Below are positions 871 to 64,000 of a stretch of DNA of 64,000 nt, one piece after another (positions within the stretch are counted from its first letter, which is position 1; every line of letters begins with the position of its first letter). The stretch is from Auanema rhodensis. Taxonomy: Eukaryota; Animalia; Nematoda. The stretch spans positions 10,664,001 to 10,728,000 of the forward strand of contig OZ059895.1 of NCBI GenBank assembly GCA_964057225.1, in the 5' to 3' direction. A program made the position numbers and the translations under genes. The notes beneath the pieces were generated by a model that had not been told where the DNA came from, searched no databases, and saw only the letters and a list, made by a program, of their open reading frames with translations.

Positions 871-871
871 A

Positions 872-900: not shown

Positions 901-1130
901 GCAGCTGATTTTCAATTTGATCTCTTCCGTAACAAATGTTCTCAATTTTCAATCAGTTCTACTTAGATAGCTCAACCCAAGGCATCAAAATATCTTCAAT
1001 CTAATTTCTATATAACAGTTATAAACCAGCAGTCAATGAACCTTCATCTTAACTTTACTGTTTCTATCTTTTTCCTATCGTAACAAACATTGTTGAAACA
1101 CTATACAACTGTGAAACCTTTTTTAATTTA

Positions 1131-1457: not shown

Positions 1458-1936
1458 TTGAATTACATTTCACCTATTGACTTAGTAGATATTTTAAGAT
1501 ATCTGATTACAATATTAAGATATCTGAATACAATTTTAAGAAAATACCGATCATTATCTTATTATTGCGCAACACTAACCCTCCCATTGTATCAACTTTC
1601 TAAACAACCTCAAACCATATAAAAGCTCGAATATACAAGCCATTTTTTACTCTTAATTTAATTCTACCACTGAACCTATACCGATCTTATAATAAACTCT
1701 TCTCATTCAACTAACTGTTTGGATTCGCCACTAACTCATATTATCCCCATTAACCGGGGAACACCCGAGTATAGACGCTTGTCATTGGGAACATTAAAAC
1801 ACAAACATACCTCTTCCGTAATAATTGTTTTCAATTTTCAAGCAGTCTTACTTAGATAGCTAAACCCAAGGCAGCAAATTATCTTCAATCTTATTCCTAT
1901 ATTACAGTTATGAACCAGTAGTTAATGAACCTCCAT

Positions 1937-2182
1937 GGCCCGGTTAGTAGTTGGATCGCAGACGGCTTGGGAATCCCGGATGGCATAAGCTTTTCAAATT
2001 TTTTTAACAATCATAACACGTTGAAAGTACGCCATGCAGCTGATTTTTAATTTAATCTCTTCCGTAACAAATGTTTTCAATTTTCAAGCAGTCTTACTTA
2101 GATAGCTAAACCCAAGGCAGCAAATTATCTTTAATCTTATTTCTATATAACAGCTATGAACCAGCAGTCAATGAACCTTCAT
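1937..2182 (+). repeat. Single 246-bp satellite monomer embedded in long unit B
   Basis: GGCCCGGTTAGTAG...AATGAACCTTCAT, 246 bp, then returns to long-unit sequence CTTAACTTTACTG. Confidence 0.88.
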
Positions 2183-2194
2183 CTTAACTTTACT

Positions 2195-3241
2195 GTTTCT
2201 ATCTTTTTCCTATCGTAACAAACATTGTTGAAACACTATACAATTGTGAAACCCTTTTTAATTTATTGTATTTGGAGCTCATAAGTTTTGATATCATCAA
2301 GGGATTCAGATGGAACGTGGAAAATTACATAACTAACACAGAAGCTCAAACAGTGGATGATGAAGGAAAATATGGAATCGCACTAGAACTACCTCATATA
2401 GAACTAATATGTGATATAATGATGACGAACTGGAAATGGATAATGCCACTTGTAACCGTGATTGCCGCTGCTATATACTTTCTCTCTACTTCTGCTTCAT
2501 TCTTTATGCCAGCTCTTATATCGGTCATACTTTCCTACTGCTGTTTGGAAAAAACCAGCAATCCCCTTGTTGCAGTATCAAGAAATGTCTGATTAAATTA
2601 CATTTCACCCATTGACCTAGTACATATATTAAGATATCTGATTACAATATTAAGATATCTGAATACAATTTCAAGAAAATACCGATCATTATTTTATTAT
2701 TGCGCAACACTAACTCTCCCATTGTATCAACTTTCTAAACAACCTCAAACCATATAAAAGCTCGAATATACGAGCCATTTTTTACTCTTAATTTAATTTC
2801 ACCACTGAACCTATACCGATCTTATAATAAACTCTTCTCATTCAACTAACTGTTTGGATTTGCCACTAACTCATATTATCCCTATTAACCGGGGAACAAC
2901 CGAGTATAGACGCTTGTCATTGGGAACATTAAAACACAAACATACCACGTTCAAAGTACGCCATCCCGTCCAATCTGGCACGTCGAGCAAAGTTGGGCCT
3001 GGTTAGTAGTTGGATCGGAGACGGCTTGGAAATCCCGGGTGGCGTAAGCTTTTCAAATTTTTTTAACAATCATAACACGTTGAAAATACGCCATGTAGCT
3101 GATTTTTAATTTTATCTCTTCCGTAACAAATGTTTCCAATTTTCAAGCAGTTTTACTTAGATAGCTCAACCCAAGGCAGCAAATTATCTTTAATCTTATT
3201 TCTATATTACAGTTATGAACCAGTAGTTAATGAACCTTCAT
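2195..3241 (+). repeat. Long repeat unit A', running directly into the satellite array
   Basis: Colinear with 1-1047 at offset 2194; after AACCTTCAT (3241) it continues GGCCCGG (satellite) instead of CTTAACTTT (long unit). Confidence 0.92.
2932..3050 (+). pseudogene. 5S rRNA pseudogene, second copy; its 3' half is the start of the satellite array
   Basis: Near-identical to 738-856 at offset 2194; ends GGCGTAAGCT+TTT; same missing 5' strand of helix I. Confidence 0.9.
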
Positions 3242-3256
3242 GGCCCGGTTAGTAGT

Positions 3257-3274
3257 TGGATCGGAGACGGCTTG
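3257..3274 (+). promoter_or_regulatory. 5S internal control region box C (TFIIIA site); representative of the copy in each monomer
   Basis: TGGATCGGAGACGGCTTG equals 5S nt 80-97; nearly invariant along the array. Function not shown. Confidence 0.55.
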
Positions 3275-6200
3275 AGAATCCCGGGTGGCGTATGCTTTTC
3301 AAATTTTTTTAACAATCATAACACGTTAAAAGTGCGCCATGCAGCTGATTTTCAATTTTATCTCTTCCGTAATAAATGTTTTCAATTTTCAAGCAGTCTT
3401 ACTTAGATAGCAAAACCCAAGGCAGCAAATTATCTTTAATCTTGATTCTATATTACAACTATGAACCAGTAGGTAATGAACCTCCATGGCCGGTTAGTAG
3501 TTGGATCGGAGACGGCTGGGGAATCCCGGGTGGCGTAAGCTTTTCAAATTTTTTAACAATCATAACACGTTGAAAACACGCCATGTAGCTGATTTTTAAT
3601 TTTATCTCTTCCGTAACAAATGTTTCCAATTTTCAAGCAGTTTTACTTAGATAGCTCAACCCAAGGCAGCAAATTATCTTTAGTCTTATTTCTATATTAC
3701 AGTTATGAACCAGTAGTTAATGAACCTTAATGGCCCGGTTAGTAGTTGGATCGGAGACGGCTTGAGAATCCCGGGTGGCGTATGCTTTTCAAATTTTTTT
3801 AACAATCATAACACGTTGAAAGTACGCCATGCAGCTGATTTTCAATTTTATCTCTTCCGTAATAAATGTTTTCAATTTTCAAGCAGTCTTACTTAGATAG
3901 CAAAACCCAAGGCAGCAAATTATCTTTAATCTTGATTCTATATTACAGCTATGAACCAGTAGGTAATGAACCTCCATGGCCGGTTAGTAGTTGGATCGGA
4001 GACGGCTGGGGAATCCCGGGTGGCGTAAGCTTTTCAAATTTTTTTAACATTCATAACACGTTGAAAGTACGCCATGCAGCTGATTTTTAATTTTATCTCT
4101 TCCGTAAGAAATGTTTCCAATTTTCAAGCAGTTTTACTTAGATAGCTCAACCCAAGGCAGCAAATTATCTTTAATCTTATTCCTATATTACAGTTATGAA
4201 CCAGTAGTTAATGAACCTTCATGGCCCGGTTAGTAGTTGGATCGGAGACGGCTTGGGAATCCCGGGTAGCGTAAGCTTTTCAAATTATTTCAACAATCAT
4301 AACACGTTGAAAGTACGCCATGCAGCTGATTTTCAATTTTATCTCTTCCGTAACAAACTTATTCAATTTTCAAGCAGTCTTACTTAGATAGCAAAACCCA
4401 AGGCAGCAAATTATCTTCAATCTTGATTTTATATTACAGCTATGAACCAGAAGTTAATGAACCTCCATGGCCGGTTAGTAGTTGGATCGGAGACGGCTTG
4501 GGAATCCCGGATGGCGTAAGCTTTTCAAATCTTTTCAACAATCATAACACGTTGAAAGTACGGCATGCAGCTGATTTTTAATTTTATCTCTTCCGTAACA
4601 AATGTTTCCAATTTTCAAGCAGTTTTACTTAGATAGCTCAAACCAAGGCAGCAAATTATCTTCAATCTTATTTCTGTACTACAGTTATGAACCAGTAGTT
4701 AATGAACCTTCATGGCCCGGTTAGTAGTTGGATCGGAGACGGCTTGGGAATCCCGGATGGCGTAAACTTTTCAAATTTTTTTAACAATCATAACATGTTG
4801 AAAGTACGCCATGCAGCTGATTTTTAATTTTATCTCTTCCGTAACAAATGTTTCCAATTTTCAAGCAGTTTTACTTAGATAGCTCAACCCAAGGCAGCAA
4901 ATTATCTTTAATCTTATTTCTATATTACAGTTATGAACCAGTAGTTAATGAACCTTCATGGCCCGGTTAGTAGTTGGATCGGAGACGGCTTGGGAATCCC
5001 GGGTGGCGTAAGCTTTTCAAATTTTTTTAACAATCATAACACGTTGAAAGTACGCCATTCAGCTGATTTTCAATTTTATCTCTTCCGTAATAAATGTTTT
5101 CAATTTTCAAGCAGTTTTACTTAGATAGCAAAACCCAAGGCAGCAAATTATCTTTAATCTTGATTCTATATTACAGCTATGAACCAGTAGTTAATGAACC
5201 TCCATGGCCGGTTAGTAGTTGGATCGGAGACGGCTTGGGAATCCCGGGTGGCGTAAGCTTTTCAAATTTTTTTAACAATCATAACACGTTGAAAGTACGC
5301 CATTCAGCTGATTTTCAATTTTATCTCTTCCGTAATAAATGTTTTCAATTTTCAAGCAGTTTTACTTAGATAGCAAAACCCAAGGCAGCAAATTATCTTT
5401 AATCTTGATTCTATATTACAGCTATGAACCAGTAGTTAATGAACCTCCATGGCCGGTTAGTAGTTGGATCGGAGACGGCTTGGGAATCCCGGGTGGCGTA
5501 AGCTTTTCAAATTTTTTTAACAATCATAACACGTTAAAAGTACGCCATGCAGCTGATTTTTAATTTTGTCTCTTCCGTAACAAATTTATTCAATTTTCAA
5601 GCAGTTTTACTTAGATAGCTCAAACCACGGCAGCAAATTATCTTCAATCTTATTTCTATATTACAGTTATGAACCAGTAGTTAATGAACCTTCATGGCCC
5701 GGTTAGTAGTTGGATCGGAGACGGCTTTGGGAATCCCGGATGGCGTAAGCTTTTCAAATTTTTTTAACAATCATAACACGTTGAAAATACGCCATGCAGC
5801 TGATTTTTAATTTTATCTGTTCCGTAACAAATGTTTTCAATTTTCAAGCAGTTTTACTTAGACAGCTCAACCCAAGGCAGCAAATTATCTCCAGTCTTAT
5901 TTCTATATTACAGTTATGAACCAGTTGTTAATGAACCTTCATGGCCCGGTTAGTAGTTGGATCGGAGACGGCTTGGGAATCCCGGATGGCGTAAACTTTT
6001 CAAATTTTTTTAACAATCATAACATGTTGAAAGTACGCCATGCAGCTCATTTTTAATTTTATCTCTTCCGTAACAAATGTTTCCAATTTTCAAGCAGTTT
6101 TACTTAGATAGCTCAACCCAAGGCAGCAAATTATCTTTAATCTTATTTCTATATTACAGTTATGAACCAGTAGTTAATGAACCTTCATGGCCCGGTTAGT

Positions 6201-39200: not shown

Positions 39201-39285
39201 TATGCTTTTCAAATTTTTTTAACAATCATAACACGTTAAAAGTGCGCCATGCAGCTGATTTTCCATTTTATCTCTTCCGTAATAA

Positions 39286-40422
39286 ATGTTTTCAATTTTC
39301 AAGCAGTCTTACTTAGATAGCAAAACCCAAGGCAGCAAATTATTTTTAATCTTGATTCTATATTACAACTATCTAATTGATCACTCGGTTCTTTTCCACA
39401 AATTTAAAACCATTGGTATCTGCGGTTCTCTTCAAACTTTTCTCAAAAACTTCATCACTGGCAGATCTTACTCAGTTCTTGTCAATGGTTCTCTTTCTAC
39501 TTCTGTAAACTTATCTTGTGGTGTCCCACAAGGCACTGTTCTCGGTCCTCTTCTATTCCTTTTCTACATTAATGACATTACGTCTTCTCTCCCTGAAGAC
39601 GTTCATCCTACACTTTTTGCCGATGATCTCAAACTATACAGTACTAATCCGGTAAGTCTACAGATTGCCTTAAACACAATCAACGCCTGGTGCAAAAATA
39701 ATGGAATGATGGTCAACACCACCAAATCCAAAATTATGATTGTGTGCAATAATAGCTCAACCCTCAACCCCACCAAGCCATTTACCTTTGGTGAGTTTCC
39801 TTTAGACTTTGTACCTCATTATAAAGACCTTGGAGTCTTAACTGATAACAATCTAACATTTGATTGTCACATAAACGCCATCTCTTGCGCCGGAGCTCTC
39901 AAATGTCGCATCCTGCTACGTTGCTTCTACTCTAGATCACCTTCATTTATGTTCAACCTTTTTTGCAGCTACGTTCGACCAATCCTTGAATATGCATCCG
40001 TGATATGGTCTCCCCAAGTATCTAAAAAAATATCTCGTATTGAGATGGTTCAAAAAAAATTCTTGCGAGCAGTCTTCTCAAGAGCAGGAATTTTTTCCGA
40101 CTACAAAAGTCAGCTCACTTTTTTGAATGCTCAAGAACTATCAACCAGGAGACAGGTAACTGATCTAGGTTTCTATTTCTCTCAAATTAAAGACGTATCA
40201 ACGGACAGTATTTTAAGAATTTTTCAAATTAAACATTTCACCCACTCTCTTCGCAGACACCAATGGAATATCGACTATCCCGAGCTTCGGAAAAAGGCGA
40301 CAAGAAATGGTATTGAGTACAGAAGCATCAAAACATGGAACGATCTACCTGAAAACCTTATCAACCTTACTAATGTTCATAATTTTAAAAAACACCTACT
40401 CTCTGCTCCAATTGATTTGTAA
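39286..40422 (+). CDS. Chimeric ORF: 29 satellite-derived codons fused in frame to the C-terminal 349 aa of a LINE ORF2 reverse transcriptase (partial)
   Basis: MFSIFKQ...YYNY from satellite then LIDHSVL...; contains PQG and FADD motifs but lacks the endonuclease and the DxxKAFD motif. Confidence 0.8.
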   Translation: MFSIFKQSYLDSKTQGSKLFLILILYYNYLIDHSVLFHKFKTIGICGSLQTFLKNFITGRSYSVLVNGSLSTSVNLSCGVPQGTVLGPLLFLFYINDITSSLPEDVHPTLFADDLKLYSTNPVSLQIALNTINAWCKNNGMMVNTTKSKIMIVCNNSSTLNPTKPFTFGEFPLDFVPHYKDLGVLTDNNLTFDCHINAISCAGALKCRILLRCFYSRSPSFMFNLFCSYVRPILEYASVIWSPQVSKKISRIEMVQKKFLRAVFSRAGIFSDYKSQLTFLNAQELSTRRQVTDLGFYFSQIKDVSTDSILRIFQIKHFTHSLRRHQWNIDYPELRKKATRNGIEYRSIKTWNDLPENLINLTNVHNFKKHLLSAPIDL

Positions 40423-40909
40423 ACCATCCATTGTAATTAATGTTCTCACCTCTCGAAAAACTATTTTTTTTTCTTTTATCAGGCTCCTTTTTATTTGTAG
40501 TTCGTATTTTTTCACACTTCTCTATGACCACATGGCAACAGTCTACCATCTATTTTTCTTTGTCCCTTCTCAATAATTGTTACTTCGTCACTATTCCTAT
40601 AGACATTAGTCATACGGATCGGACGCTAGTTACCTCCAAATTGCTAGAACGGGCTTGCCTCACATCACGAGTACCACCGTACCTAACAACCACATTAGTG
40701 AGGTCAGCCATTGTGCTGAACAAACCCCAAGCATACAGCAAGAATTTTATTTGGCAGACTGTTCACTATTGATCATAGATAAGCGAGCTCTTATCGCACT
40801 TACAATATTAAAAGTCCTTTTTTATGTTCTTATTGAATGGTTCTTGATTTTTTCACTCCATGACTTAACAGCTACTGTCTTAACCTGTGATATTGAACAA
40901 TAAACATTA
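39373..40909 (+). mobile_element. 5'-truncated non-LTR retrotransposon (CR1-like LINE), copy 1, 1537 bp
   Basis: RT motifs GVPQGTVLGPLLFLFYIND, LFADDLKLY, YKDLGV; CR1/L2-type C-terminal motifs YVRPILEYASVIWSP, IEMVQKK, WNDLPE; 487-bp 3' UTR with AATAAA at 40899-40904; flanked by AACTAT at 39367-39372 and 40910-40915. Confidence 0.95.
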
Positions 40910-42790
40910 AACTATGAACCAGTAGGTAATGAACCTCCATGGCCGGTTAGTAGTTGGATCGGAGACGGCTGGGGAATCCCGGGTGGCGTAAGCTTTTCAA
41001 ATTTTTTAACAATCATAACACGTTGAAAATACGCCATGTAGCTGATTTTTAATTTTATCTCTTCCATAACAAATGTTTCCAATTTTCAAGCAGTTTTACT
41101 TAGATAGCTCAACCCGAGGCAGCAAATTATCTTTAGTCTTATTTCTATATTACAGTTATGAACCAGTAGTTAATGAACCTTCATGGCCCGGTTAGTAGTT
41201 GGATCGGAGACGGCTTGAGAATCCCGGGTGGCGTATGCTTTTCAAATTTTTTTAACAATCATAACACGTTGAAAGTACGCCATGCAGCTGATTTTCAATT
41301 TTATCTCTTCCGTAATAAATGTTTTCAATTTTCAAGCGATCTTACTTAGATAGCAAAACCCAAGGCAGCAAATTATCTTTAATCTTGATTCTATATTACA
41401 GCTATGAACCAGTAGGTAATGAACCTCCATGGCCGGTTAGTAGTTGGATCGGAGACGGCTGGGGAATCCCGGGTGGCGTAAGCTTTTCAAATTTTTTTAA
41501 CATTCATAACACGTTGAAAGTACGCCATGCAGCTGATTTTTAATTTTATCTCTTCCGTAAGAAATGTTTCCAATTTTCAAGCAGTTTTACTTAGATAGCT
41601 CAACCCAAGGCAGCAAATTATCTTTAATCTTATTCCTATATTACAGTTATGAACCAGTAGTTAATGAACCTTCATGGCCCGGTTAGTAGTTGAATCGGAG
41701 ACGGCTTGGGAATCCCGGGTGGCGTAAGCTTTTCAAATTTTTTCAACAATCATAACACGTTGAAAGTACGCCATGCAGCTGATTTTCAATTTTATCTCTT
41801 CCGTAACAAACTTATTCAATTTTCAAGCAGTCTTACTTAGATAGCAAAACCCAAGGCAGCAAATTATCTTCAATCTTGATTCTATATTACAGCTATGAAC
41901 CGGAAGTTAATGAACCTCCATGGCCGGTTAGTAGTTGGATCGGAGACGGCTTGGGAATCCCGGGTGGCGTAAGATTTTCAAATCTTTTCAACAATCATAA
42001 CACGTTAAAAGTACGCCATGCAGCTGATTTTTAATTTTGTCTCTTCCGTAACAAATTTATTCAATTTTCAAGCAGTCTTACTTAGATAGCAAAACCCAAG
42101 GCAGCAAATTATCTTCAATCTTGATTCTATATTACAGCTATGAACCAGTAGTTAATGAACCTCCATGGCCGGTTAGTAGTTGGATCGGAGACGGCTTGGG
42201 AATCCCGGGTGGCGTAAGATTTTCAAATCTTTTCAACAATCATAACACGTTAAAAGTACGCCATGCAGCTGGTTTTTAATTTTGTCTCTTCCGTAACAAA
42301 TTTATTCAATTTTCAAGCAGTTTTACTTAGACAGCTCAAACCACGGCAGCAAATTATCTTCAATCTTATTTCTATATTACAGTTATGAACCAGTAGTTAA
42401 TGAACCTTCATGGCCCGGTTAGTAGTTGGATCGGAGACGGCTTGGGAATCCCGGATGGCGTAAACTTTTCAAATTTTTTTAACAATCATAACACGTTGAA
42501 AGTACGCCATGCAGCTGATTTTTAATTTTATCTCTTCCGTAACAAATGTTTCCAATTTTCAAGCAGTTTTACTTAGATAGCTCAACCCAAGGCAGCAAAA
42601 TATCTTTAATCTTATTTCTATATTACAGTTATGAACCAGTAGTTAATGAACCTCCATGGCCGGTTAGTAGTTGGATCGGAGACGGCTGGGGAATCCCGGA
42701 TGGCGTAAACTTTTCAAATTTTTTTAACAATCATAACACGTTGAAAGTGCGCCATGCAGCTGATTTTCAATTTTATCTCTTCCGTAATAA

Positions 42791-43927
42791 ATGTTTTCAA
42801 TTTTCAAGCAGTCTTACTTAGATAGCAAAACCCAAGGCAGCAAATTATTTTTAATCTTGATTCTATATTACAACTATCTAATTGATCACTCGGTTCTTTT
42901 CCACAAATTTAAAACCATTGGTATCTGCGGTTCTCTTCAAACTTTTCTCAAAAACTTCATCACTGGCAGATCTTACTCAGTTCTTGTCAATGGTTCTCTT
43001 TCTACTTCTGTAAACTTATCTTGTGGTGTCCCACAAGGCACTGTTCTCGGTCCTCTTCTATTCCTTTTCTACATTAATGACATTACGTCTTCTCTCCCTG
43101 AAGACGTTCATCCTACACTTTTTGCCGATGATCTCAAACTATACAGTACTAATCCGGTAAGTCTACAGATTGCCTTAAACACAATCAACGCCTGGTGCAA
43201 AAATAATGGAATGATGGTCAACACCACCAAATCCAAAATTATGATTGTGTGCAATAATAGCTCAACCCTCAACCCCACCAAGCCATTTACCTTTGGTGAG
43301 TTTCCTTTAGACTTTGTACCTCATTATAAAGACCTTGGAGTCTTAACTGATAACAATCTAACATTTGATTGTCACATAAACGCCATCTCTTGCGCCGCAG
43401 CTCTCAAATGTCGCATCCTGCTACGTTGCTTCTACTCTAGATCACCTTCATTTATGTTCAACCTTTTTTGCAGCTACGTTCGACCAATCCTTGAATATGC
43501 ATCCGTGATATGGTCTCCCCAAGTATCTAAAAAAATATCTCGTATTAAGATGGTTCAAAAAAAATTCTTGCGAGCAGTCTTCTCAAGAGCAGGAATTTTT
43601 TCCGACTACAAAAGTCAGCTCACTTTTTTGAATGCTCAAGAACTATCAACCAGGAGACAGGTAACTGATCTAGGTTTCTATTTCTCTCAAATTAAAGACG
43701 TATCAACGGACAGTATTTTAAGAATTTTTCAAATTAAACATTTCACCCACTCTCTTCGCAGACACCAATGGAATATCGACTATCCCGAGCTTCGGAAAAA
43801 GGCGACAAGAAATGGTATTGAGTACAGAAGCATCAAAACATGGAACGATCTACCTGAAAACCTTATCAACCTTACTAATGTTCATAATTTTAAAAAACAC
43901 CTACTCTCTGCTCCAATTGATTTGTAA
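42791..43927 (+). CDS. Chimeric satellite/partial LINE reverse transcriptase ORF, copy 2
   Basis: 378 aa, two substitutions relative to copy 1. Confidence 0.8.
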   Translation: MFSIFKQSYLDSKTQGSKLFLILILYYNYLIDHSVLFHKFKTIGICGSLQTFLKNFITGRSYSVLVNGSLSTSVNLSCGVPQGTVLGPLLFLFYINDITSSLPEDVHPTLFADDLKLYSTNPVSLQIALNTINAWCKNNGMMVNTTKSKIMIVCNNSSTLNPTKPFTFGEFPLDFVPHYKDLGVLTDNNLTFDCHINAISCAAALKCRILLRCFYSRSPSFMFNLFCSYVRPILEYASVIWSPQVSKKISRIKMVQKKFLRAVFSRAGIFSDYKSQLTFLNAQELSTRRQVTDLGFYFSQIKDVSTDSILRIFQIKHFTHSLRRHQWNIDYPELRKKATRNGIEYRSIKTWNDLPENLINLTNVHNFKKHLLSAPIDL

Positions 43928-44414
43928 ACCATCCATTGTAATTAATGTTCTCACCTCTCGAAAAACTATTTTTTTTTCTTTTATCAGGCTCCTTTTTATT
44001 TGTAGTTCGTATTTTTTCACACTTCTCTATGACCACATGGCAACAGTCTACCATCTATTTTTCTTTGTCCCTTCTCAATAATTGTTACTTCGTCACTATT
44101 CCTATAGACATTAGTCATACGGATCGGACGCTAGTTACCTCCAAATTGCTAGAACGGGCTTGCCTCACATCACGAGTACCACCGTACCTAACAACCACAT
44201 TAGTGAGGTCAGCCATTGTGCTGAACAAACCCCAAGCATACAGCAAGAATTTTATTTGGCAGACTGTTCACTATTGATCATAGATAAGCGAGCTCTTATC
44301 GCACTTACAATATTAAAAGTCCTTTTTTATGTTCTTATTGAATGGTTCTTGATTTTTTCACTCCATGACTTAACAGCTACTGTCTTAACCTGTGATATTG
44401 AACAATAAACATTA
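42878..44414 (+). mobile_element. 5'-truncated CR1-like LINE, copy 2
   Basis: Same junctions, length and TSD as copy 1; offset 3505. Confidence 0.95.
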
Positions 44415-46050
44415 AACTATGAACCAGTAGGTAATGAACCTCCATGGCCGGTTAGTAGTTGGATCGGAGACGGCTGGGGAATCCCGGGTGGCGTAAGCTT
44501 TTCAAATTTTTTAACAATCATAACACGTTGAAAATACGCCATGTAGCTGATTTTTAATTTTATCTCTTCCATAACAAATGTTTCCAATTTTCAAGCAGTT
44601 TTACTTAGATAGCTCAACCCGAGGCAGCAAATTATCTTTAGTCTTATTTCTATATTACAGTTATGAACCAGTAGTTAATGAACCTTCATGGCCCGGTTAG
44701 TAGTTGGATCGGAGACGGCTTGAGAATCCCGGGTGGCGTATGCTTTTCAAATTTTTTTAACAATCATAACACGTTGAAAGTACGCCATGCAGCTGATTTT
44801 CAATTTTATCTCTTCCGTAATAAATGTTTTCAATTTTCAAGCGATCTTACTTAGATAGCAAAACCCAAGGCAGCAAATTATCTTTAATCTTGATTCTATA
44901 TTACAGCTATGAACCAGTAGGTAATGAACCTCCATGGCCGGTTAGTAGTTGGATCGGAGACGGCTGGGGAATCCCGGGTGGCGTAAGCTTTTCAAATTTT
45001 TTTAACATTCATAACACGTTGAAAGTACGCCATGCAGCTGATTTTTAATTTTATCTCTTCCGTAAGAAATGTTTCCAATTTTCAAGCAGTTTTACTTAGA
45101 TAGCTCAACCCAAGGCAGCAAATTATCTTTAATCTTATTCCTATATTACAGTTATGAACCAGTAGTTAATGAACCTTCATGGCCCGGTTAGTAGTTGGAT
45201 CGGAGACGGCTTGGGAATCCCGGGTGGCGTAAGCTTTTCAAATTTTTTCAACAATCATAACACGTTGAAAGTACGCCATGCAGCTGATTTTCAATTTTAT
45301 CTCTTCCGTAACAAACTTATTCAATTTTCAAGCAGTCTTACTTAGATAGCAAAACCCAAGGCAGCAAATTATCTTCAATCTTGATTCTATATTACAGCTA
45401 TGAACCAGTAGTTAATGAACCTCCATGGCCGGTTAGTAGTTGGATCGGAGACGGCTTGGGAATCCCGGGTGGCGTAAGATTTTCAAATCTTTTCAACAAT
45501 CATAACACGTTAAAAGTACGCCATGCAGCTGATTTTTAATTTTGTCTCTTCCGTAACAAATTTATTCAATTTTCAAGCAGTTTTACTTAGATAGCTCAAA
45601 CCACGGCAGCAAATTATCTTCAATATTATTTCTATATTACAGTTATGAACCAGTAGTTAATGAACTTTCATGGCCCGGTTAGTAGTTGGATCGGAGACGG
45701 CTTGGGAATCCCGGATGGCGTAAACTTTTCAAATTTTTTTAACAATCATAACACGTTGAAAGTACGCCATGCAGCTGATTTTTAATTTTATCTCTTCCGT
45801 AACAAATGTTTCCAATTTTCAAGCAGTTTTACTTAGATAGCTCAACCCAAGGCAGCAAAATATCTTTAATCTTATTTCTATATTACAGTTATGAACCAGT
45901 AGTTAATGAACCTCCATGGCCGGTTAGTAGTTGGATCGGAGACGGCTGGGGAATCCCGGATGGCGTAAACTTTTCAAATTTTTTTAACAATCATAACACG
46001 TTGAAAGTGCGCCATGCAGCTGATTTTCAATTTTATCTCTTCCGTAATAA

Positions 46051-47187
46051 ATGTTTTCAATTTTCAAGCAGTCTTACTTAGATAGCAAAACCCAAGGCAG
46101 CAAATTATTTTTAATCTTGATTCTATATTACAACTATCTAATTGATCACTCGGTTCTTTTCCACAAATTTAAAACCATTGGTATCTGCGGTTCTCTTCAA
46201 ACTTTTCTCAAAAACTTCATCACTGGCAGATCTTACTCAGTTCTTGTCAATGGTTCTCTTTCTACTTCTGTAAACTTATCTTGTGGTGTCCCACAAGGCA
46301 CTGTTCTCGGTCCTCTTCTATTCCTTTTCTACATTAATGACATTACGTCTTCTCTCCCTGAAGACGTTCATCCTACACTTTTTGCCGATGATCTCAAACT
46401 ATACAGTACTAATCCGGTAAGTCTACAGATTGCCTTAAACACAATCAACGCCTGGTGCAAAAATAATGGAATGATGGTCAACACCACCAAATCCAAAATT
46501 ATGATTGTGTGCAATAATAGCTCAACCCTCAACCCCACCAAGCCATTTACCTTTGGTGAGTTTCCTTTAGACTTTGTACCTCATTATAAAGACCTTGGAG
46601 TCTTAACTGATAACAATCTAACATTTGATTGTCACATAAACGCCATCTCTTGCGCCGCAGCTCTCAAATGTCGCATCCTGCTACGTTGCTTCTACTCTAG
46701 ATCACCTTCATTTATGTTCAACCTTTTTTGCAGCTACGTTCGACCAATCCTTGAATATGCATCCGTGATATGGTCTCCCCAAGTATCTAAAAAAATATCT
46801 CGTATTAAGATGGTTCAAAAAAAATTCTTGCGAGCAGTCTTCTCAAGAGCAGGAATTTTTTCCGACTACAAAAGTCAGCTCACTTTTTTGAATGCTCAAG
46901 AACTATCAACCAGGAGACAGGTAACTGATCTAGGTTTCTATTTCTCTCAAATTAAAGACGTATCAACGGACAGTATTTTAAGAATTTTTCAAATTAAACA
47001 TTTCACCCACTCTCTTCGCAGACACCAATGGAATATCGACTATCCCGAGCTTCGGAAAAAGGCGACAAGAAATGGTATTGAGTACAGAAGCATCAAAACA
47101 TGGAACGATCTACCTGAAAACCTTATCAACCTTACTAATGTTCATAATTTTAAAAAACACCTACTCTCTGCTCCAATTGATTTGTAA
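46051..47187 (+). CDS. Chimeric satellite/partial LINE reverse transcriptase ORF, copy 3
   Basis: 378 aa, same as copy 2. Confidence 0.8.
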   Translation: MFSIFKQSYLDSKTQGSKLFLILILYYNYLIDHSVLFHKFKTIGICGSLQTFLKNFITGRSYSVLVNGSLSTSVNLSCGVPQGTVLGPLLFLFYINDITSSLPEDVHPTLFADDLKLYSTNPVSLQIALNTINAWCKNNGMMVNTTKSKIMIVCNNSSTLNPTKPFTFGEFPLDFVPHYKDLGVLTDNNLTFDCHINAISCAAALKCRILLRCFYSRSPSFMFNLFCSYVRPILEYASVIWSPQVSKKISRIKMVQKKFLRAVFSRAGIFSDYKSQLTFLNAQELSTRRQVTDLGFYFSQIKDVSTDSILRIFQIKHFTHSLRRHQWNIDYPELRKKATRNGIEYRSIKTWNDLPENLINLTNVHNFKKHLLSAPIDL

Positions 47188-47674
47188 ACCATCCATTGTA
47201 ATTAATGTTCTCACCTCTCGAAAAACTATTTTTTTTTCTTTTATCAGGCTCCTTTTTATTTGTAGTTCGTATTTTTTCACACTTCTCTATGACCACATGG
47301 CAACAGTCTACCATCTATTTTTCTTTGTCCCTTCTCAATAATTGTTACTTCGTCACTATTCCTATAGACATTAGTCATACGGATCGGACGCTAGTTACCT
47401 CCAAATTGCTAGAACGGGCTTGCCTCACATCACGAGTACCACCGTACCTAACAACCACATTAGTGAGGTCAGCCATTGTGCTGAACAAACCCCAAGCATA
47501 CAGCAAGAATTTTATTTGGCAGACTGTTCACTATTGATCATAGATAAGCGAGCTCTTATCGCACTTACAATATTAAAAGTCCTTTTTTATGTTCTTATTG
47601 AATGGTTCTTGATTTTTTCACTCCATGACTTAACAGCTACTGTCTTAACCTGTGATATTGAACAATAAACATTA
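46138..47674 (+). mobile_element. 5'-truncated CR1-like LINE, copy 3
   Basis: Same junctions and TSD; offset 3260 from copy 2; identical translated ORF. Confidence 0.95.
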
Positions 47675-49310
47675 AACTATGAACCAGTAGGTAATGAACC
47701 TCCATGGCCGGTTAGTAGTTGGATCGGAGACGGCTGGGGAATCCCGGGTGGCGTAAGCTTTTCAAATTTTTTAACAATCATAACACGTTGAAAATACGCC
47801 ATGTAGCTGATTTTTAATTTTATCTCTTCCATAACAAATGTTTCCAATTTTCAAGCAGTTTTACTTAGATAGCTCAACCCGAGGCAGCAAATTATCTTTA
47901 GTCTTATTTCTATATTACAGTTATGAACCAGTAGTTAATGAACCTTCATGGCCCGGTTAGTAGTTGGATCGGAGACGGCTTGAGAATCCCGGTTGGCGTA
48001 TGCTTTTCAAATTTTTTTAACAATCATAACACGTTGAAAGTATGCCATGCAGCTGATTTTCAATTTTATCTCTTCCGTAATAAATGTTTTCAATTTTCAA
48101 GCGATCTTACTTAGATAGCAAAACCCAAGGCAGCAAATTATCTTTAATCTTGATTCTATATTACAGCTATGAACCAGTAGGTAATGAACCTCCATGGCCG
48201 GTTAGTAGTTGGATCGGAGACGGCTGGGGAATCCCGGGTGGCGTAAGCTTTTCAAATTTTTTTAACATTCATAACACGTTGAAAGTACGCCATGCAGCTG
48301 ATTTTTAATTTTATCTCTTCCGTAAGAAATGTTTCCAATTTTCAAGCAGTTTTACTTAGATAGCTCAACCCAAGGCAGCAAATTATCTTTAATCTTATTC
48401 CTATATTACAGTTATGAACCAGTAGTTAATGAACCTTCATGGCCCGGTTAGTAGTTGGATCGGAGACGGCTTGGGAATCCCGGGTGGCGTAAGCTTTTCA
48501 AATTTTTTCAACAATCATAACACGTTGAAAGTACGCCATGCAGCTGATTTTCAATTTTATCTCTTCCGTAACAAACTTATTCAATTTTCAAGCAGTCTTA
48601 CTTAGATAGCAAAACCCAAGGCAGCAAATTATCTTCAATCTTGATTCTATATTACAGCTATGAACCAGTAGTTAATGAACCTCCATGGCCGGTTAGTAGT
48701 TGGATCGGAGACGGCTTGGGAATCCCGGGTGGCGTAAGATTTTCAAATCTTTTCAACAATCATAACACGTTAAAAGTACGCCATGCAGCTGATTTTTAAT
48801 TTTGTCTCTTCCGTAACAAATTTATTCAATTTTCAAGCAGTTTTACTTAGATAGCTCAAACCACGGCAGCAAATTATCTTCAATATTATTTCTATATTAC
48901 AGTTATGAACCAGTAGTTAATGAACTTTCATGGCCCGGTTAGTAGTTGGATCGGAGACGGCTTGGGAATCCCGGATGGCGTAAACTTTTCAAATTTTTTT
49001 AACAATCATAACACGTTGAAAGTACGCCATGCAGCTGATTTTTAATTTTATCTCTTCCGTAACAAATGTTTCCAATTTTCAAGCAGTTTTACTTAGATAG
49101 CTCAACCCAAGGCAGCAAAATATCTTTAATCTTATTTCTATATTACAGTTATGAACCAGTAGTTAATGAACCTCCATGGCCGGTTAGTAGTTGGATCGGA
49201 GACGGCTGGGGAATCCCGGATGGCGTAAACTTTTCAAATTTTTTTAACAATCATAACACGTTGAAAGTGCGCCATGCAGCTGATTTTCAATTTTATCTCT
49301 TCCGTAAGAA

Positions 49311-50447
49311 ATGTTTTCAATTTTCAAGCAGTCTTACTTAGATAGCAAAACCCAAGGCAGCAAATTATTTTTAATCTTGATTCTATATTACAACTATCTA
49401 ATTGATCACTCGGTTCTTTTCCACAAATTTAAAACCATTGGTATCTGCGGTTCTCTTCAAACTTTTCTCAAAAACTTCATCACTGGCAGATCTTACTCAG
49501 TTCTTGTCAATGGTTCTCTTTCTACTTCTGTAAACTTATCTTGTGGTGTCCCACAAGGCACTGTTCTCGGTCCTCTTCTATTCCTTTTCTACATTAATGA
49601 CATTACGTCTTCTCTCCCTGAAGACGTTCATCCTACACTTTTTGCCGATGATCTCAAACTATACAGTACTAATCCGGTAAGTCTACAGATTGCCTTAAAC
49701 ACAATCAACGCCTGGTGCAAAAATAATGGAATGATGGTCAACACCACCAAATCCAAAATTATGATTGTGTGCAATAATAGCTCAACCCTCAACCCCACCA
49801 AGCCATTTACCTTTGGTGAGTTTCCTTTAGACTTTGTACCTCATTATAAAGACCTTGGAGTCTTAACTGATAACAATCTAACATTTGATTGTCACATAAA
49901 CGCCATCTCTTGCGCCGCAGCTCTCAAATGTCGCATCCTGCTACGTTGCTTCTACTCTAGATCACCTTCATTTATGTTCAACCTTTTTTGCAGCTACGTT
50001 CGACCAATCCTTGAATATGCATCCGTGATATGGTCTCCCCAAGTATCTAAAAAAATATCTCGTATTAAGATGGTTCAAAAAAAATTCTTGCGAGCAGTCT
50101 TCTCAAGAGCAGGAATTTTTTCCGACTACAAAAGTCAGCTCACTTTTTTGAATGCTCAAGAACTATCAACCAGGAGACAGGTAACTGATCTAGGTTTCTA
50201 TTTCTCTCAAATTAAAGACGTATCAACGGACAGTATTTTAAGAATTTTTCAAATTAAACATTTCACCCACTCTCTTCGCAGACACCAATGGAATATCGAC
50301 TATCCCGAGCTTCGGAAAAAGGCGACAAGAAATGGTATTGAGTACAGAAGCATCAAAACATGGAACGATCTACCTGAAAACCTTATCAACCTTACTAATG
50401 TTCATAATTTTAAAAAACACCTACTCTCTGCTCCAATTGATTTGTAA
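49311..50447 (+). CDS. Chimeric satellite/partial LINE reverse transcriptase ORF, copy 4
   Basis: 378 aa, same as copy 2. Confidence 0.8.
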   Translation: MFSIFKQSYLDSKTQGSKLFLILILYYNYLIDHSVLFHKFKTIGICGSLQTFLKNFITGRSYSVLVNGSLSTSVNLSCGVPQGTVLGPLLFLFYINDITSSLPEDVHPTLFADDLKLYSTNPVSLQIALNTINAWCKNNGMMVNTTKSKIMIVCNNSSTLNPTKPFTFGEFPLDFVPHYKDLGVLTDNNLTFDCHINAISCAAALKCRILLRCFYSRSPSFMFNLFCSYVRPILEYASVIWSPQVSKKISRIKMVQKKFLRAVFSRAGIFSDYKSQLTFLNAQELSTRRQVTDLGFYFSQIKDVSTDSILRIFQIKHFTHSLRRHQWNIDYPELRKKATRNGIEYRSIKTWNDLPENLINLTNVHNFKKHLLSAPIDL

Positions 50448-50934
50448 ACCATCCATTGTAATTAATGTTCTCACCTCTCGAAAAACTATTTTTTTTTCTT
50501 TTATCAGGCTCCTTTTTATTTGTAGTTCGTATTTTTTCACACTTCTCTATGACCACATGGCAACAGTCTACCATCTATTTTTCTTTGTCCCTTCTCAATA
50601 ATTGTTACTTCGTCACTATTCCTATAGACATTAGTCATACGGATCGGACGCTAGTTACCTCCAAATTGCTAGAACGGGCTTGCCTCACATCACGAGTACC
50701 ACCGTACCTAACAACCACATTAGTGAGGTCAGCCATTGTGCTGAACAAACCCCAAGCATACAGCAAGAATTTTATTTGGCAGACTGTTCACTATTGATCA
50801 TAGATAAGCGAGCTCTTATCGCACTTACAATATTAAAAGTCCTTTTTTATGTTCTTATTGAATGGTTCTTGATTTTTTCACTCCATGACTTAACAGCTAC
50901 TGTCTTAACCTGTGATATTGAACAATAAACATTA
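49398..50934 (+). mobile_element. 5'-truncated CR1-like LINE, copy 4
   Basis: Same junctions and TSD; offset 3260 from copy 3; identical translated ORF. Confidence 0.95.
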
Positions 50935-53900
50935 AACTATGAACCAGTAGGTAATGAACCTCCATGGCCGGTTAGTAGTTGGATCGGAGACTGCTGGGGA
51001 ATCCCGGGTGGCGTAAGCTTTTCAAATTTTTTAACAATCATAACACGTTGAAAATACGCCATGTAGCTGATTTTTAATTTTATCTCTTCCATAACAAATG
51101 TTTCCAATTTTCAAGCAGTTTTACTTAGATAGCTCAACCCGAGGCAGCAAATTATCTTTAGTCTTATTTCTATATTACAGTTATGAACCAGTAGTTAATG
51201 AACCTTCATGGCCCGGTTAGTAGTTGGATCGGAGACGGCTTGAGAATCCCGGGTGGCGTATGCTTTTCAAATTTTTTTAACAATCATAACACGTTGAAAG
51301 TACGCCATGCAGCTGATTTTCAATTTTATCTCTTCCGTAATAAATGTTTTCAATTTTCAAGCGATCTTACTTAGATAGCAAAACCCAAGGCAGCAAATTA
51401 TCTTTAATCTTGATTCTATATTACAGCTATGAACCAGTAGGTAATGAACCTCCATGGCCGGTTAGTAGTTGGATCGGAGACGGCTGGGGAATCCCGGGTG
51501 GCGTAAGCTTTTCAAATTTTTTTAACATTCATAACACGTTGAAAGTACGCCATGCAGCTGATTTTTAATTTTATCTCTTCCGTAAGAAATGTTTCCAATT
51601 TTCAAGCAGTTTTACTTAGATAGCTCAACCCAAGGCAGCAAATTATCTTTAATCTTATTCCTATATTACAGTTATGAACCAGTAGTTAATGAACCTTCAT
51701 GGCCCGGTTAGTAGTTGAATCGGAGACGGCTTGGGAATCCCGGGTGGCGTAAGCTTTTCAAATTTTTTCAACAATCATAACACGTTGAAAGTACGCCATG
51801 CAGCTGATTTTCAATTTTATCTCTTCCGTAACAAACTTATTCAATTTTCAAGCAGTCTTACTTAGATAGCAAAACCCAAGGCAGCAAATTATCTTCAATC
51901 TTGATTCTATATTACAGCTATGAACCGGAAGTTAATGAACCTCCATGGCCGGTTAGTAGTTGGATCGGAGACGGCTTGGGAATCCCGGGTGGCGTAAGCT
52001 TTTCAAATTTTTTTAACAATCATAACACGTTAAAAGTACGCCATGCAGCTGATTTTTAATTTTGTCTCTTCCGTAACAAATTTATTCAATTTTCAAGCAG
52101 TTTTACTTAGATAGCTCAAACCACGGCAGCAAATTATCTTCAATATTATTTCTATATTACAGTTATGAACCAGTAGTTAATGAACTTTCATGGCCCGGTT
52201 AGTAGTTGGATCGGAGACGGCTTGGGAATCCCGGATGGCGTAAACTTTTCAAATTTTTTTAACAATCATAACACGTTGAAAGTACGCCATGCAGCTGATT
52301 TTTAATTTTATCTCTTCCGTAACAAATGTTTCCAATTTTCAAGCAGTTTTACTTAGATAGCTCAACCCAAGGCAGCAAAATATCTTTAATCTTATTTCTA
52401 TATTACAGTTATGAACCAGTAGTTAATGAACCTTCATGGCCCGGTTAGTAGTTGGATCGGAGACGGCTTGGGAATCCCGGGTGGTGTAAGCTTTTCAAAT
52501 TTTTTTAACAATCATAACACGTTGAAAGTACGCCATGCAGCTGATTTTCAATTTTATCTCTTCCGTAATAAATGTTTTCATTTTTCAAGCAGTCTTACTT
52601 AGATAGCAAAACCCAAGGCAGCAATATATCTTTAGTCTTGATTCTATATTACAGCTATGAACCAGTAGTTAATGAACCTCCATGGCCGGTTAGTAGTTGG
52701 ATCGCAGACGGCTTGGGAATCCCGGGTGGCGTAAGCTTTTCAAATTTTTTTAACAATCATAACACGTTAAAAGTACGCCATGCAGCTGATTTTTAATTTT
52801 GTCTCTTCCGTAACAAATTTATTCAATTTTCAAGCAGTTTTACTTAGACAGCTCAAACCACGGCAGCAAATTATCTTCAATCTTATTTCTATATTACAGT
52901 TATGAACCAGTAGTTAATGAACCTTCATGGCCCGGTTAGTAGTTGGATCGGAGACGGCTTTGGGAATCCCGGATGGCGTAAGCTTTTCAAATCTTTTCAA
53001 CAATCATAACACGTTAAAAGTACGCCATGCAGCTGATTTTTAATTTTGTCTCTTCCGTAACAAATTTATTCAATTTTCAAGCAGTTTTACTTAGATAGCT
53101 CAAACCACGGCAGCAAATTATCTTCAATCTTATTTCTATATTACAGTTATGAACGAGTAGTTAATGAACCTTCATGGCCCGGTTAGTAGTTGGATCGGAG
53201 ACGGCTTGAGAATCCCGGGTGGCGTATGCTTTTCAAATTTTTTTAACAATCATAAAACGTTAAAAGTGCGCCATGCAGCTGATTTTCAATTTTAACTCTT
53301 CCGTAATAAATGTTTTCAATTTTCAAGCAGTCTTACTTAGATAGCAAAACCCAAGGCAGCAAATTATCTTTAATCTTGATTCTATATTACAACTATGAAC
53401 CAGTAGGTAATGAACCTCCATGGCCGGTTAGTAGTTGGATCGGAGACGGCTGGGGAATCCCGGGTGGCGTAAGCTTTTCAAATTTTTTAACAATCATAAC
53501 ACGTTGAAAATACGCCATGTAGCTGATTTTTAATTATATCTCTTCCGTAACAAATGTTTCCAATTTTCAAGCAGTTTTACTTAGATAGCTCAACCCAAGG
53601 CAGCAAATTATCTTTAGTCTTATTTCTATATTACAGTTATGAACCAGTAGTTAATGAACCTCCATGGCCGGTTAGTAGTTGGATCGGAGACGGCTTTGGG
53701 AATCCCGGATGGCGTAAGCTTTTCAAATCTTTTCAACAATCATAACACGTTAAAAGTACGCCATGCAGCTGATTTTTAATTTTGTCTCTTCCGTAACAAA
53801 TTTATTCAATTTTCGAGCAGTTTTACTTAGATAGCTCAAACCACGGCAGCAAATTATCTTCAATCTTATTTCTATATTACAGTTATGAACCAGTAGTTAA

Positions 53901-59900: not shown

Positions 59901-62900
59901 CATGTAGCTGATTTTTAATTTTATCTCTTCCGTAACAAATGTTTCCAATTTTCAAGCAGTTTTACTTAGATAGCTCAACCCAAGGCAGCAAATTATCTTT
60001 AGTCTTATTTCTATATTACAGTTATGAACCAGTAGTTAATGAACCTTCATGGCCCGGTTAGTAGTTGGATCGGAGACGGCTTGAGAATCCCGGGTGGCGT
60101 ATGCTTTTCAAATTTTTTTAACAATCATAACACGTTGAAAGTACGCCATGCAGCTGATTTTCAATTTTATCTCTTCCGTAATAAATGTTTTCAATTTTCA
60201 AGCAGTCTTACTTAGATAGCAAAACCCAAGGCAGCAAATTATCTTTAATCTTGATTCTATATTACAGCTATGAACCAGTAGGTAATGAACCTCCATGGCC
60301 GGTTAGTAGTTGGATCGGAGACGGCTTTGGGAATCCCGGATGGCGTAAGCTTTTCAAATCTTTTCAACAATCATAACACGTTAAAAGTACGCCATGCAGC
60401 TGATTTTTAATTTTGCCTCTTCCGTAACAAATTTATTCAATTTTCAAGCAGTTTTACTTAGATAGCTCAAACCACGGCAGCAAATTATCTTCAATCTTAT
60501 TTCTATATTACAGTTATGAACGAGTAGTTAATGAACCTTCATGGCCCGGTTAGTAGTTGGATCGGAGACGGCTTGAGAATCCCGGGTGGCGTATGCTTTT
60601 CAAATTTTTTTAACAATCATAACACGTTAAAAGTGCGCCATGCAGCTGATTTTCAATTTTATCTCTTCCGTAATAAATGTTTTCAATTTTCAAGCAGTCT
60701 TACTTAGATAGCAAAACCCAAGGCAGCAAATTATCTTTAATCTTGATTCTATATTACAACTATGAACCAGTAGGTAATGAACCTCCATGGCCGGTTAGTA
60801 GTTGGATCGGAGACGGCTGGGGAATCCCGGGTGGCGTAAGCTTTTCAAATTTTTTAACAATCATAACACGTTGAAAATACGCCATGTAGCTGATTTTTAA
60901 TTTTATCTCTTCCGTAACAAATGTTTCCAATTTTCAAGCAGTTTTACTTAGATAGCTCAACCCAAGGCAGCAAATTATCTTTAGTCTTATTTCTATATTA
61001 CAGTTATGAACCAGTAGTTAATGAACCTCCATGGCCGGTTAGTAGTTGGATCGGAGACGGCTTTGGGAATCCCGGATGGCGTAAGCTTTTCAAATCTTTT
61101 CAACAATCATAACACGTTAAAAGTACGCCATGCAGCTGATTTTTAATTTTGTCTCTTCCGTAACAAATTTATTCAATTTTCGAGCAGTTTTACTTAGATA
61201 GCTCAAACCACGGCAGCAAATTATCTTCAATCTTATTTCTATATTACAGTTATGAACCAGTAGTTAATGAACCTTCATGGCCCGGTTAGTACTTGGATCG
61301 GAGACGGCTTTGGGAATCCCGGATGGCGTAAGCTTTTCAAATCTTTTCAACAATCATAACACGTTGAAAGTACGCCATGCAGCTGATTTTTAATTTTATC
61401 TCTTCCGTAACAAATGTTTCCAATTTTCAAGCAGTTTTACTTAGATAGCTCAACCCAAGGCAGCAAAATATCTTTAATCTTATTTCTATATTACAGTTAT
61501 GAACCAGTAGTTAATGAACCTTCATGGCCCGGTTAGTAGTTGGATCGGAGACGGCTTGGGAATCCCGGGTGGCGTAAGCTTTTCAAATTTTTTTAACAAT
61601 CATAACACGTTAAAAGTACGCCATGCAGCTGATTTTTAATTTTGTCTCTTCCGTAACAAATTTATTCAATTTTCAAGCAGTTTTACTTAGATAGCTCAAA
61701 CCACGGCAGCAAATTATCTTCAATATTATTTCTATATTACAGTTATGAACCAGTAGTTAATGAACTTTCATGGCCCGGTTAGTAGTTGGATCGGAGACGG
61801 CTTGGGAATCCCGGATGGCGTAAACTTTTCAAATTTTTTTAACAATCATAACACGTTGAAAGTACGCCATGCAGCTGATTTTTAATTTTATCTCTTCCGT
61901 AACAAATGTTTCCAATTTTCAAGCAGTTTTACTTAGATAGCTCAACCCAAGGCAGCAAAATATCTTTAATCTTATTTCTATATTACAGTTATGAACCAGT
62001 AGTTAATGAACCTTCATGGCCCGGTTAGTAGTTGGATCGGAGACGGCTTGGGAATCCCGGGTGGTGTAAGCTTTTCAAATTTTTTTAACAATCATAACAC
62101 GTTGAAAGTACGCCATGCAGCTGATTTTCAATTTTATCTCTTCCGTAACAAATTTATTCAATTTTCAAGCAGTTTTACTTAGACAGCTCAAACCACGGCA
62201 GCAAAATATCTTTAATCTTGATTCTATATTACAACTATGAACCAGTAGGTAATGAACCTCCATGGCCGGTTAGTAGTTGGATCGCAGACGGCTTGGGAAT
62301 CCCGGGTGGCGTAAGCTTTTCAAATTTTTTTAACAATCATAACACGTTAAAAGTACGCCATGCAGCTGATTTTTAATTTTGTCTCTTCCGTAACAAATTT
62401 ATTCAATTTTCAAGCAGTTTTACTTAGACAGCTCAAACCACGGCAGCAAATTATCTTCAATCTTATTTCTATATTACAGTTATGAACCAGTAGTTAATGA
62501 ACCTTCATGGCCCGGTTAGTAGTTGGATCGGAGACGGCTTTGGGAATCCCGGATGGCGTAAGCTTTTCAAATCTTTTCAACAATCATAACACGTTAAAAG
62601 TACGCCATGCAGCTGATTTTTAATTTTGTCTCTTCCGTAACAAATTTATTCAATTTTCAAGCAGTTTTACTTAGATAGCTCAAACCACGGCAGCAAATTA
62701 TCTTCAATCTTATTTCTATATTACAGTTATGAACGAGTAGTTAATGAACCTTCATGGCCCGGTTAGTAGTTGGATCGGAGACGGCTTGAGAATCCCGGGT
62801 GGCGTATGCTTTTCAAATTTTTTTAACAATCATAACACGTTAAAAGTGCGCCATGCAGCTGATTTTCAATTTTATCTCTTCCGTAATAAATGTTTTCATT

Positions 62901-64000
62901 TTTCAAGCAGTCTTACTTAGATAGCAAAACCCAAGGCAGCAATATATCTTTAGTCTTGATTCTATATTACAGCTATGAACCAGTAGTTAATGAACCTCCA
63001 TGGCCGGTTAGTAGTTGGATCGCAGACGGCTTGGGAATCCCGGGTGGCGTAAGCTTTTCAAATTTTTTTAACAATCATAACACGTTAAAAGTACGCCATG
63101 CAGCTGATTTTTAATTTTGTCTCTTCCGTAACAAATTTATTCAATTTTCAAGCAGTTTTACTTAGACAGCTCAAACCACGGCAGCAAATTATCTTCAATC
63201 TTATTTCTATATTACAGTTATGAACCAGTAGTTAATGAACCTTCATGGCCCGGTTAGTAGTTGGATCGGAGACGGCTTTGGGAATCCCGGATGGCGTAAG
63301 CTTTTCAAATCTTTTCAACAATCATAACACGTTAAAAGTACGTCATGCAGCTGATTTTTAATTTTGTCTCTTCCGTAACAAATTTATTCAATTTTCAAGC
63401 AGTTTTACTTAGATAGCTCAAACCACGGCAGCAAATTATCTTCAATCTTATTTCTATATTACAGTTATGAACGAGTAGTTAATGAACCTTCATGGCCCGG
63501 TTAGTAGTTGGATCGGAGACGGCTTGAGAATCCCGGGTGGCGTATGCTTTTCAAATTTTTTTAACAATCATAACACGTTAAAAGTGCGCCATGCAGCTGA
63601 TTTTCAATTTTATCTCTTCCGTAATAAATGTTTTCAATTTTCAAGCAGTCTTACTTAGATAGCAAAACCCAAGGCAGCAAATTATCTTTAATCTTGATTC
63701 TATATTACAACTATGAACCAGTAGGTAATGAACCTCCATGGCCGGTTAGTAGTTGGATCGGAGACGGCTGGGGAATCCCGGGTGGCGTAAGCTTTTCAAA
63801 TTTTTTAACAATCATAACACGTTGAAAATACGCCATGTAGCTGATTTTTAATTTTATCTCTTCCGTAACAAATGTTTCCAATTTTCAAGCAGTTTTACTT
63901 AGATAGCTCAACCCAAGGCAGCAAATTATCTTTAGTCTTATTTCTATATTACAGTTATGAACCAGTAGTTAATGAACCTTCATGGCCCGGTTAGTAGTTG

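Follow-up and report, generated by a model that had tools for sequence, protein, structure and literature searches.

A 246-bp satellite probably derived from a 5S rDNA-related 1.1-kb tandem repeat in a nematode-like genome

Satellite DNAs derived from 5S ribosomal RNA (rRNA) genes are an established class: besides 5SHindIII-DNA of Hoplias and the PcP190 repeat of frogs, examples include a satellite on a Plantago B chromosome and repeats at switchgrass centromeres. In the fish Hoplias malabaricus, 5SHindIII-DNA is a tandem satellite that lies beside true 5S ribosomal DNA (rDNA) arrays and combines a partial gene with spacer-derived DNA (Martins et al. 2006). PcP190 of hyloid frogs is a 5S-derived repeat of ~190 bp that is distinct from 5S rDNA and shows evidence of recombining with it on occasion, and EEEb3 of the hagfish Eptatretus burgeri is a tandem unit built as a mosaic of partial 5S rDNA and unrelated DNA. 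Here we describe a satellite of this class in a 64,000-nucleotide stretch of Auanema rhodensis contig OZ059895.1 (positions 10,664,001 to 10,728,000 of the forward strand), hereafter the window, from whose first letter all coordinates are counted. A sequence-only reading of the window, made without database searches, had placed a satellite of more than 60 kb here and invoked 5S-derived precedents, which are indeed established in fish, frogs, plants and hagfish. We consider it highly probable that this non-coding satellite goes back to a 1.1-kb tandem repeat related to 5S rDNA, from which 246 bp were tandemly duplicated and then amplified by unequal exchange.

Tandem Repeats Finder (TRF), run on the 64-kb window, assigned positions 2996–64000 of the forward strand to a single array with a period of 246 bp and 247.1 copies, in agreement with the extent and monomer length given by the sequence-only reading. 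The right end of the array lies beyond the window edge, so its 61 kb are a minimum length. The roughly 247 copies share one orientation: a 16-nt monomer anchor occurred 225 times on the forward strand and never on the reverse strand, at a spacing of 244–247 bp that was interrupted by four gaps of exactly 1,788 bp. Mean pairwise identity among the 218 clean (uninterrupted) monomers was 94%. When the 5S-like copy at 2932–3050, adjacent to the array, is taken as nt 1–119, consensus positions 1–55 of the monomer correspond without gaps to 5S nt 65–119 (53/55 identical to that copy), positions 56–70 are a T-run spacer of 7% GC, positions 71–99 correspond to nt 5–33 (26/29 identical), and positions 100–246 are 147 bp of AT-rich DNA (30% GC) with no 5S match. 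Alignment to the adjacent copy left nt 34–64 without a counterpart in the consensus. This is the fragment composition that had been noticed from the letters, and the nt 5–33 fragment is significant against the 5S 5' part by itself (nhmmer, E = 4e-4 in 3.3 kb).

In searches of the 64 kb with the Rfam 5S model RF00001, the gathering score was passed only at 747–846 (52.9 bits) and 2932–3050 (53.9 bits), and no monomer reached the threshold; when the threshold was relaxed, every monomer examined, all within the first 5 kb, matched at 18–33 bits, the score coming from helices IV and V in the 3' half. A functional 5S rDNA array has a complete gene of ~119 nt above the Rfam threshold in each repeat, whereas the two hits here both lie outside the array proper. 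What the window holds is a long head-to-tail array with its own monomer length and with 5S homology in the monomer, which is an incomplete 5S gene distinct from functional 5S rDNA; this is the composition of a 5S rDNA-derived satellite. Global alignments by cmscan pair TCTTATT, upstream in the monomer, with the 3' end GTAAGC, as if the monomer held a degenerate 5S 5' half, but we treat this pairing as chance because it amounts to five complementary bases within ~100 nt of AT-rich DNA. A box A-like element at the monomer junction was likewise discarded, as about 8 of 16 matches by eye cannot be told apart from chance in AT-rich DNA.

The array resembles the described systems to different degrees. 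Like 5SHindIII-DNA, it is tandem and joins part of a 5S gene to spacer-type DNA; it differs in belonging to another phylum and in having an unrelated sequence. The fish satellite is centromeric by fluorescence in situ hybridization. In the window, moreover, the array is still bordered by parental and hybrid units, and its monomer combines parts of two gene copies. The PcP190 family is characterized by a 120-bp region that spans the whole transcribed 5S at about 70% similarity. The window monomer does not have such a region: it keeps only nt 65–119 and 5–33, at 90–96% identity to the neighbouring 5S copy, and the window satellite is therefore much younger than PcP190. EEEb3 shares the mosaic of partial 5S rDNA and unrelated DNA, but it contains SINE2-like (short interspersed nuclear element, SINE) DNA and GTA repeats and is germline-restricted, whereas the window monomer has no SINE. 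The array does not look like 5S-derived mobile elements such as SINE3 or the Cassandra terminal-repeat retrotransposon in miniature, which form dispersed copies with element ends (a tail or a long terminal repeat) and target-site duplications: within the window every copy directly adjoins the next in head-to-tail order, and neither tails nor duplications separate them.

The source of the monomer is visible directly to the left of the array, where a tandem repeat of ~1.1 kb forms three units on the forward strand, at 1–1047, 1048–2182 and 2183–3241. Unit 1, which is cut by the window start, consists of a unit-specific part (U, 1–737), a 5S-like copy (738–856) and further DNA that, together with the 3' half of that copy, is the parental equivalent of a monomer (802–1047): the 5S 3' half at 802–856, the T-run spacer at 857–871, the nt 5–33 fragment at 872–900 and AT-rich DNA at 901–1047. 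A profile built from the 218 monomers matched 802–1046, 1937–2181 and 2996–3240 end to end and without gaps (nhmmer; 261 bits over model positions 1–245 at 802–1046). The monomer is thus collinear with a single unbroken 246-bp stretch of the 1.1-kb repeat, 802–1047, and equally with 1937–2182 and 2996–3241. In units 1 and 3, 5S nt 10–64 lie directly upstream of this stretch, and the parent's 5S copy is already followed by the T-run and the nt 5–33 fragment (857–900), the fragment beginning 15 nt after the copy.

This arrangement changes how the two 5S pieces are to be understood. The sequence-only reading had taken the monomer for a single rearranged 5S gene whose centre was replaced by 147 bp of AT-rich DNA. 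That account is not supported, as the monomer follows an unbroken parent stretch and, on the evidence of this alignment, its fragments come from two different 5S copies within the parent unit: one contributes its 3' half, and of the other a remnant is left; a gene with a 147-bp centre reflects only the phase chosen in a tandem repeat. Since the T-run and the nt 5–33 fragment are already present in the parent, the two-fragment structure was inherited and not made by rearranging one gene. The direction from parent to satellite follows because a repeat without nt 34–64 cannot regenerate them. A single tandem duplication would suffice, with its left end at 5S nt 64/65 and its right end at 1047/1048. 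The duplicated stretch would start within the 5S copy at nt 65 and continue through the RNA polymerase III (Pol III) T-run, the nt 5–33 remnant and the 147 bp of AT-rich spacer, and unequal exchange would then have amplified it. This reading draws on direct observations: collinearity with the parent unit, a hybrid unit at the edge of the array, a mosaic of subfamilies, and a recently amplified 3.26-kb block that carries a retrotransposon fragment.

An arrangement of this kind is reportedly found in the oocyte-type 5S unit of Xenopus laevis, where the gene is said to be followed by a 5' partial pseudogene. The parent unit here likewise has a 5S copy followed by a duplicate, in the same orientation, of the gene's 5' part. 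The Xenopus pseudogene, however, is said to comprise nt 1–101 after a linker of ~73 bp and to belong to a functional array, whereas here only nt 5–33 are present, 15 nt behind a gene copy that looks defective.

Units 2 and 3 record the transition between repeat and satellite. Unit 2 (1048–2182) is a hybrid that runs from U through a segment like 5S nt 1–15 into a partial monomer (1808–1936) and a full monomer (1937–2182), with 5S nt 16–64 missing. The monomer profile matched it at 1808–1935 (model positions 118–245) and 1937–2181 (model positions 1–245), and RF00001 gave a sub-threshold match at 1889–1991. Within 1796–1812, 5S nt ~15 is joined straight to monomer position 118 (ACATACC|TCTTCCG) with at most 1 nt of microhomology, which marks an illegitimate deletion or recombination junction. 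In unit 3, U (2183–2931) is collinear with 1–737, and the 3' half of the 5S-like copy at 2932–3050 is itself the start of the first satellite monomer. This monomer, starting at 2996, is still parental within its 5S part, where it has T at nt 69 and A at nt 98, and is of satellite type elsewhere. The junction created by the tandem duplication (CAT|GGCC) likewise has at most one base of microhomology.

The same breakpoints bear on a different account, in which a site-specific retroelement disrupted a 5S gene at a target site between nt 64 and 65 and left the 147 bp of AT-rich DNA as a remnant of its terminal repeat, with amplification following later. The 5S part of the satellite does begin at nt 65, and the AT-rich part closes with ...TTCA, with one T between it and GGCC, a layout that would fit the end of a long terminal repeat (LTR). 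In the parent unit, however, the AT-rich end adjoins unit-specific DNA instead of 5S nt 65, nt 64 and 65 are contiguous in the parent's 5S copy, and a single positional coincidence between break and target site has a chance of roughly 4%, so that we regard retroelement seeding as very improbable. We also considered whether U (750 bp) entered a 5S gene as a solo LTR or as some other insertion, in which case CTTAAC (1048) or GCTTGTC (~2905) would be what is left of nt 1–7; there was no target duplication, and matches as short as these can be expected by chance.

Points that weigh against an origin by duplication from the 1.1-kb repeat, or against its companion claim of an inert satellite, should be set beside this evidence. 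A 5S unit of ~314 bp may have preceded the parent unit and given rise to the 1.1-kb repeat as well as to the satellite. The indication that the satellite is untranscribed comes from one small RNA contig set, and such a set shows presence, not absence.

The read contigs also reveal a sister variant, seen as loose contig ends at window positions 877, 4299 and 5526, whose 5S fragment begins at precisely nt 1 (GCTTACAAC..., GCTTAC), with ATTGAAAATCAG before it. Reverse-complemented, the 12 bases of ATTGAAAATCAG stand behind the 5S fragment in every monomer, for example at 905–916, with 218 matches against ~1 expected. Just upstream of the true 5S gene lies ATTGAAATC. Because of these 12 reverse-complemented bases behind the fragment and of ATTGAAATC upstream of the true gene, the AT-rich part may open with a segment of the 5S upstream flank in inverted orientation.

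The two 5S-like copies that passed the Rfam threshold are themselves not typical genes. Both lie on the forward strand, at 738–856 in unit 1 and 2932–3050 in unit 3, and both begin with AAACACAAA in place of the first 9 nt of the expressed gene, GCTTACGAC, while being otherwise complete. With AAACACAAA at the 5' end, helix I cannot pair: the RF00001 match to the first copy is local and covers model positions 10–110 only, and the alignment of the second carries non-pair marks over helix I. Neither copy therefore has the helix formed from the 5' and 3' ends that the genes of a functional 5S array possess. An RNA contig from run X12, which has the same organism code, aligned to 2941–3053 with 9/113 differences, and the differences between the expressed 5S and the copy at 2932–3050 include two changes in the box A region (2981, 2985). 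Upstream this contig reads ...GCTTACGAC, and its flanks differ on both sides from those of the window copies; the expressed 5S gene therefore lies elsewhere. From these features the flanking copies are probably pseudogenes. An annotation pipeline would nevertheless call them as 5S genes, and neither they nor the thousands of partial 5S matches should be counted as such in annotation. The 5S sequence of the window appears to resemble the 5S of Caenorhabditis elegans. A classical unit of SL1 and 5S was rejected, as the window held no match to the nematode SL1 spliced leader with up to three mismatches.

Variation among the monomers is concentrated at a few positions that are common to many of them. 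Clustering gave six main subfamilies with 97.6–98.9% identity within each, and the subfamilies succeed one another in local orders such as AEBC, ABB, ADF and FDGIAB. A single higher-order period was rejected: mean identity was flat (0.936–0.948) at lags of 1–30, so that the mosaic has local higher-order patterns only. Each of the four 1,788-bp gaps holds the same 1,543-bp fragment, whose open frame matches the C-terminal half of a reverse transcriptase (Pfam RVT_1, E = 2.9e-18) and which also includes a 3' tail; it is a 5'-truncated non-LTR retrotransposon, or long interspersed nuclear element (LINE). The only named relatives of its protein are distant nematode proteins, from Meloidogyne hapla, Caenorhabditis elegans (C49A1.8) and Ancylostoma ceylanicum, at 32–36% identity and thus 36% at most; a nematode host is plausible.

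All four LINE copies lie on the forward strand. The first (39373–40915) is inserted in a monomer with an AACTAT duplication; the second (42878–44420) has the same insertion site and truncation, and the third (46138–47680) and fourth (49398–50940) are identical to the second. Together they share one insertion site in the monomer, one truncation point and one AACTAT duplication, and are 99.9–100% identical. They recur in blocks of 3,260 bp, each made up of the LINE and six monomers, and two successive blocks differ at 3 positions. The shared site, truncation and duplication, together with this near-identity, show that one insertion was carried along by recent block duplication. Duplication of the LINE-bearing 3,260-bp unit is a signature of unequal exchange, and growth of the array is recent.

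Long satellite arrays are error-prone in assemblies and this one is cut by the window end, which raises the question of whether the assembler inflated or mis-joined a short repeat. Collapse or inflation, however, would not produce a non-periodic subfamily mosaic or the embedded LINE block, and the monomer occurs at very high depth in independent short-read runs that span three studies and as many organism codes, so that the probability of an artefact is close to nil. Words of window positions 1–6000 were present in eleven DNA runs from these three studies and organism codes. In the three of these runs whose contigs were aligned to the window, summed contig depth, which is not copy number, was 10^4 to 10^5 or more over the satellite and the 5S-related parts, and 3 to ~1,100 over the unit-specific segments 1201–1600 and 2401–2800. 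The satellite therefore stands at 100 to 1,000 times the unit-specific flank in all three runs, a qualitative ratio that nonetheless identifies it as high-copy. At least a third of the aligned DNA-run contigs had 99% identity or more to the window. The repeat is real, abundant and common to close relatives. Two metagenome scans with 5S- or satellite-derived words returned no matches.

Over these 64 kb, all stages in the birth of a satellite can be followed, from the parental 1.1-kb repeat through the hybrid unit and a first monomer on the 5S copy to the 61-kb array and its later, LINE-marked growth. The window is consequently a good case for teaching and for modelling of unequal exchange.

As nt 1–4 and 34–64, including box A, are missing, the monomers would make no 5S rRNA. 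Other roles for the retained 5S parts can be imagined. Each monomer could be a working chimeric Pol III unit or a binding site for transcription factor IIIA (TFIIIA), yielding short RNAs or forming a platform for 5S factors. The intermediate element, box C and the terminator are kept, with 5S nt 65–119 at 53/55, and nucleotide diversity is low at box C (0.020) and at the first TTTT run (0.002), which is nearly invariant; PcP190, the 5S-derived frog satellite, is also transcribed. On the other side, box A (nt 50–64) is absent from the monomer, the monomers score below the Rfam threshold, and long AT-rich stretches vary as little as box C and the TTTT run do. Overall diversity was 0.046 in the 5S-derived parts versus 0.065 elsewhere, a difference that is not significant (Mann-Whitney p = 0.30), and the count of variable sites did not differ significantly between the two either (Fisher p = 0.69), so that conservation of the 5S-derived parts does not significantly exceed that of the remainder, and we rejected selection on them. 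The contig set of RNA run X12 contained the true 5S and no satellite contig, although such sets show presence and not absence. Taken together, a Pol III or TFIIIA function appears improbable. If it were nonetheless true, the monomers would not be inert, thousands of copies could act as a sink or platform for 5S factors, and satellite copy number would be coupled to 5S rRNA expression, a consequence that carries the same slender probability. The preferred interpretation, that of a non-coding satellite grown by unequal exchange, suggests instead that the array behaves as an ordinary, probably heterochromatic satellite that is kept by recombination and not by selection on its 5S parts.

We found no description of a 5S-derived satellite in nematodes in the open literature, outside which most subscription journals lie, and the present one may be the first described in a nematode-like genome. 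The suggestion of an undescribed nematode family with an unusual split structure is thus sustained for the family, as far as the searchable literature extends, but not for the structure, since the two-fragment layout was inherited from the parent. No new principle is involved, as several phyla are already known to have 5S-derived satellites that carry partial genes.

The unit-specific part U has features of its own. An open reading frame (ORF) of 108 aa with a hydrophobic stretch recurs at 1131–1457 and 2266–2592 and is split in unit 1 into 72–218 and 225–398. It had no Pfam match and no record as a called gene, differs at 9 amino acids between the two units, and is probably not a gene. Exact-protein look-ups of two ORFs in the window matched nothing on record. 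In all three DNA runs the first ~150 bp of U (1–170, 1048–1200 and 2183–2340) reached a summed depth at least as high as that of the satellite, and the remainder of U is low-copy; this segment is probably part of a further repeat family that is very abundant in the genome. U as a whole is repeated from unit 1 at 1048–~1800 and 2183–2931, and every 1.1-kb unit contains a 21-bp mini-tandem repeat of 2.3–2.6 copies (TRF), at 427–482, 1494–1541 and 2621–2676.

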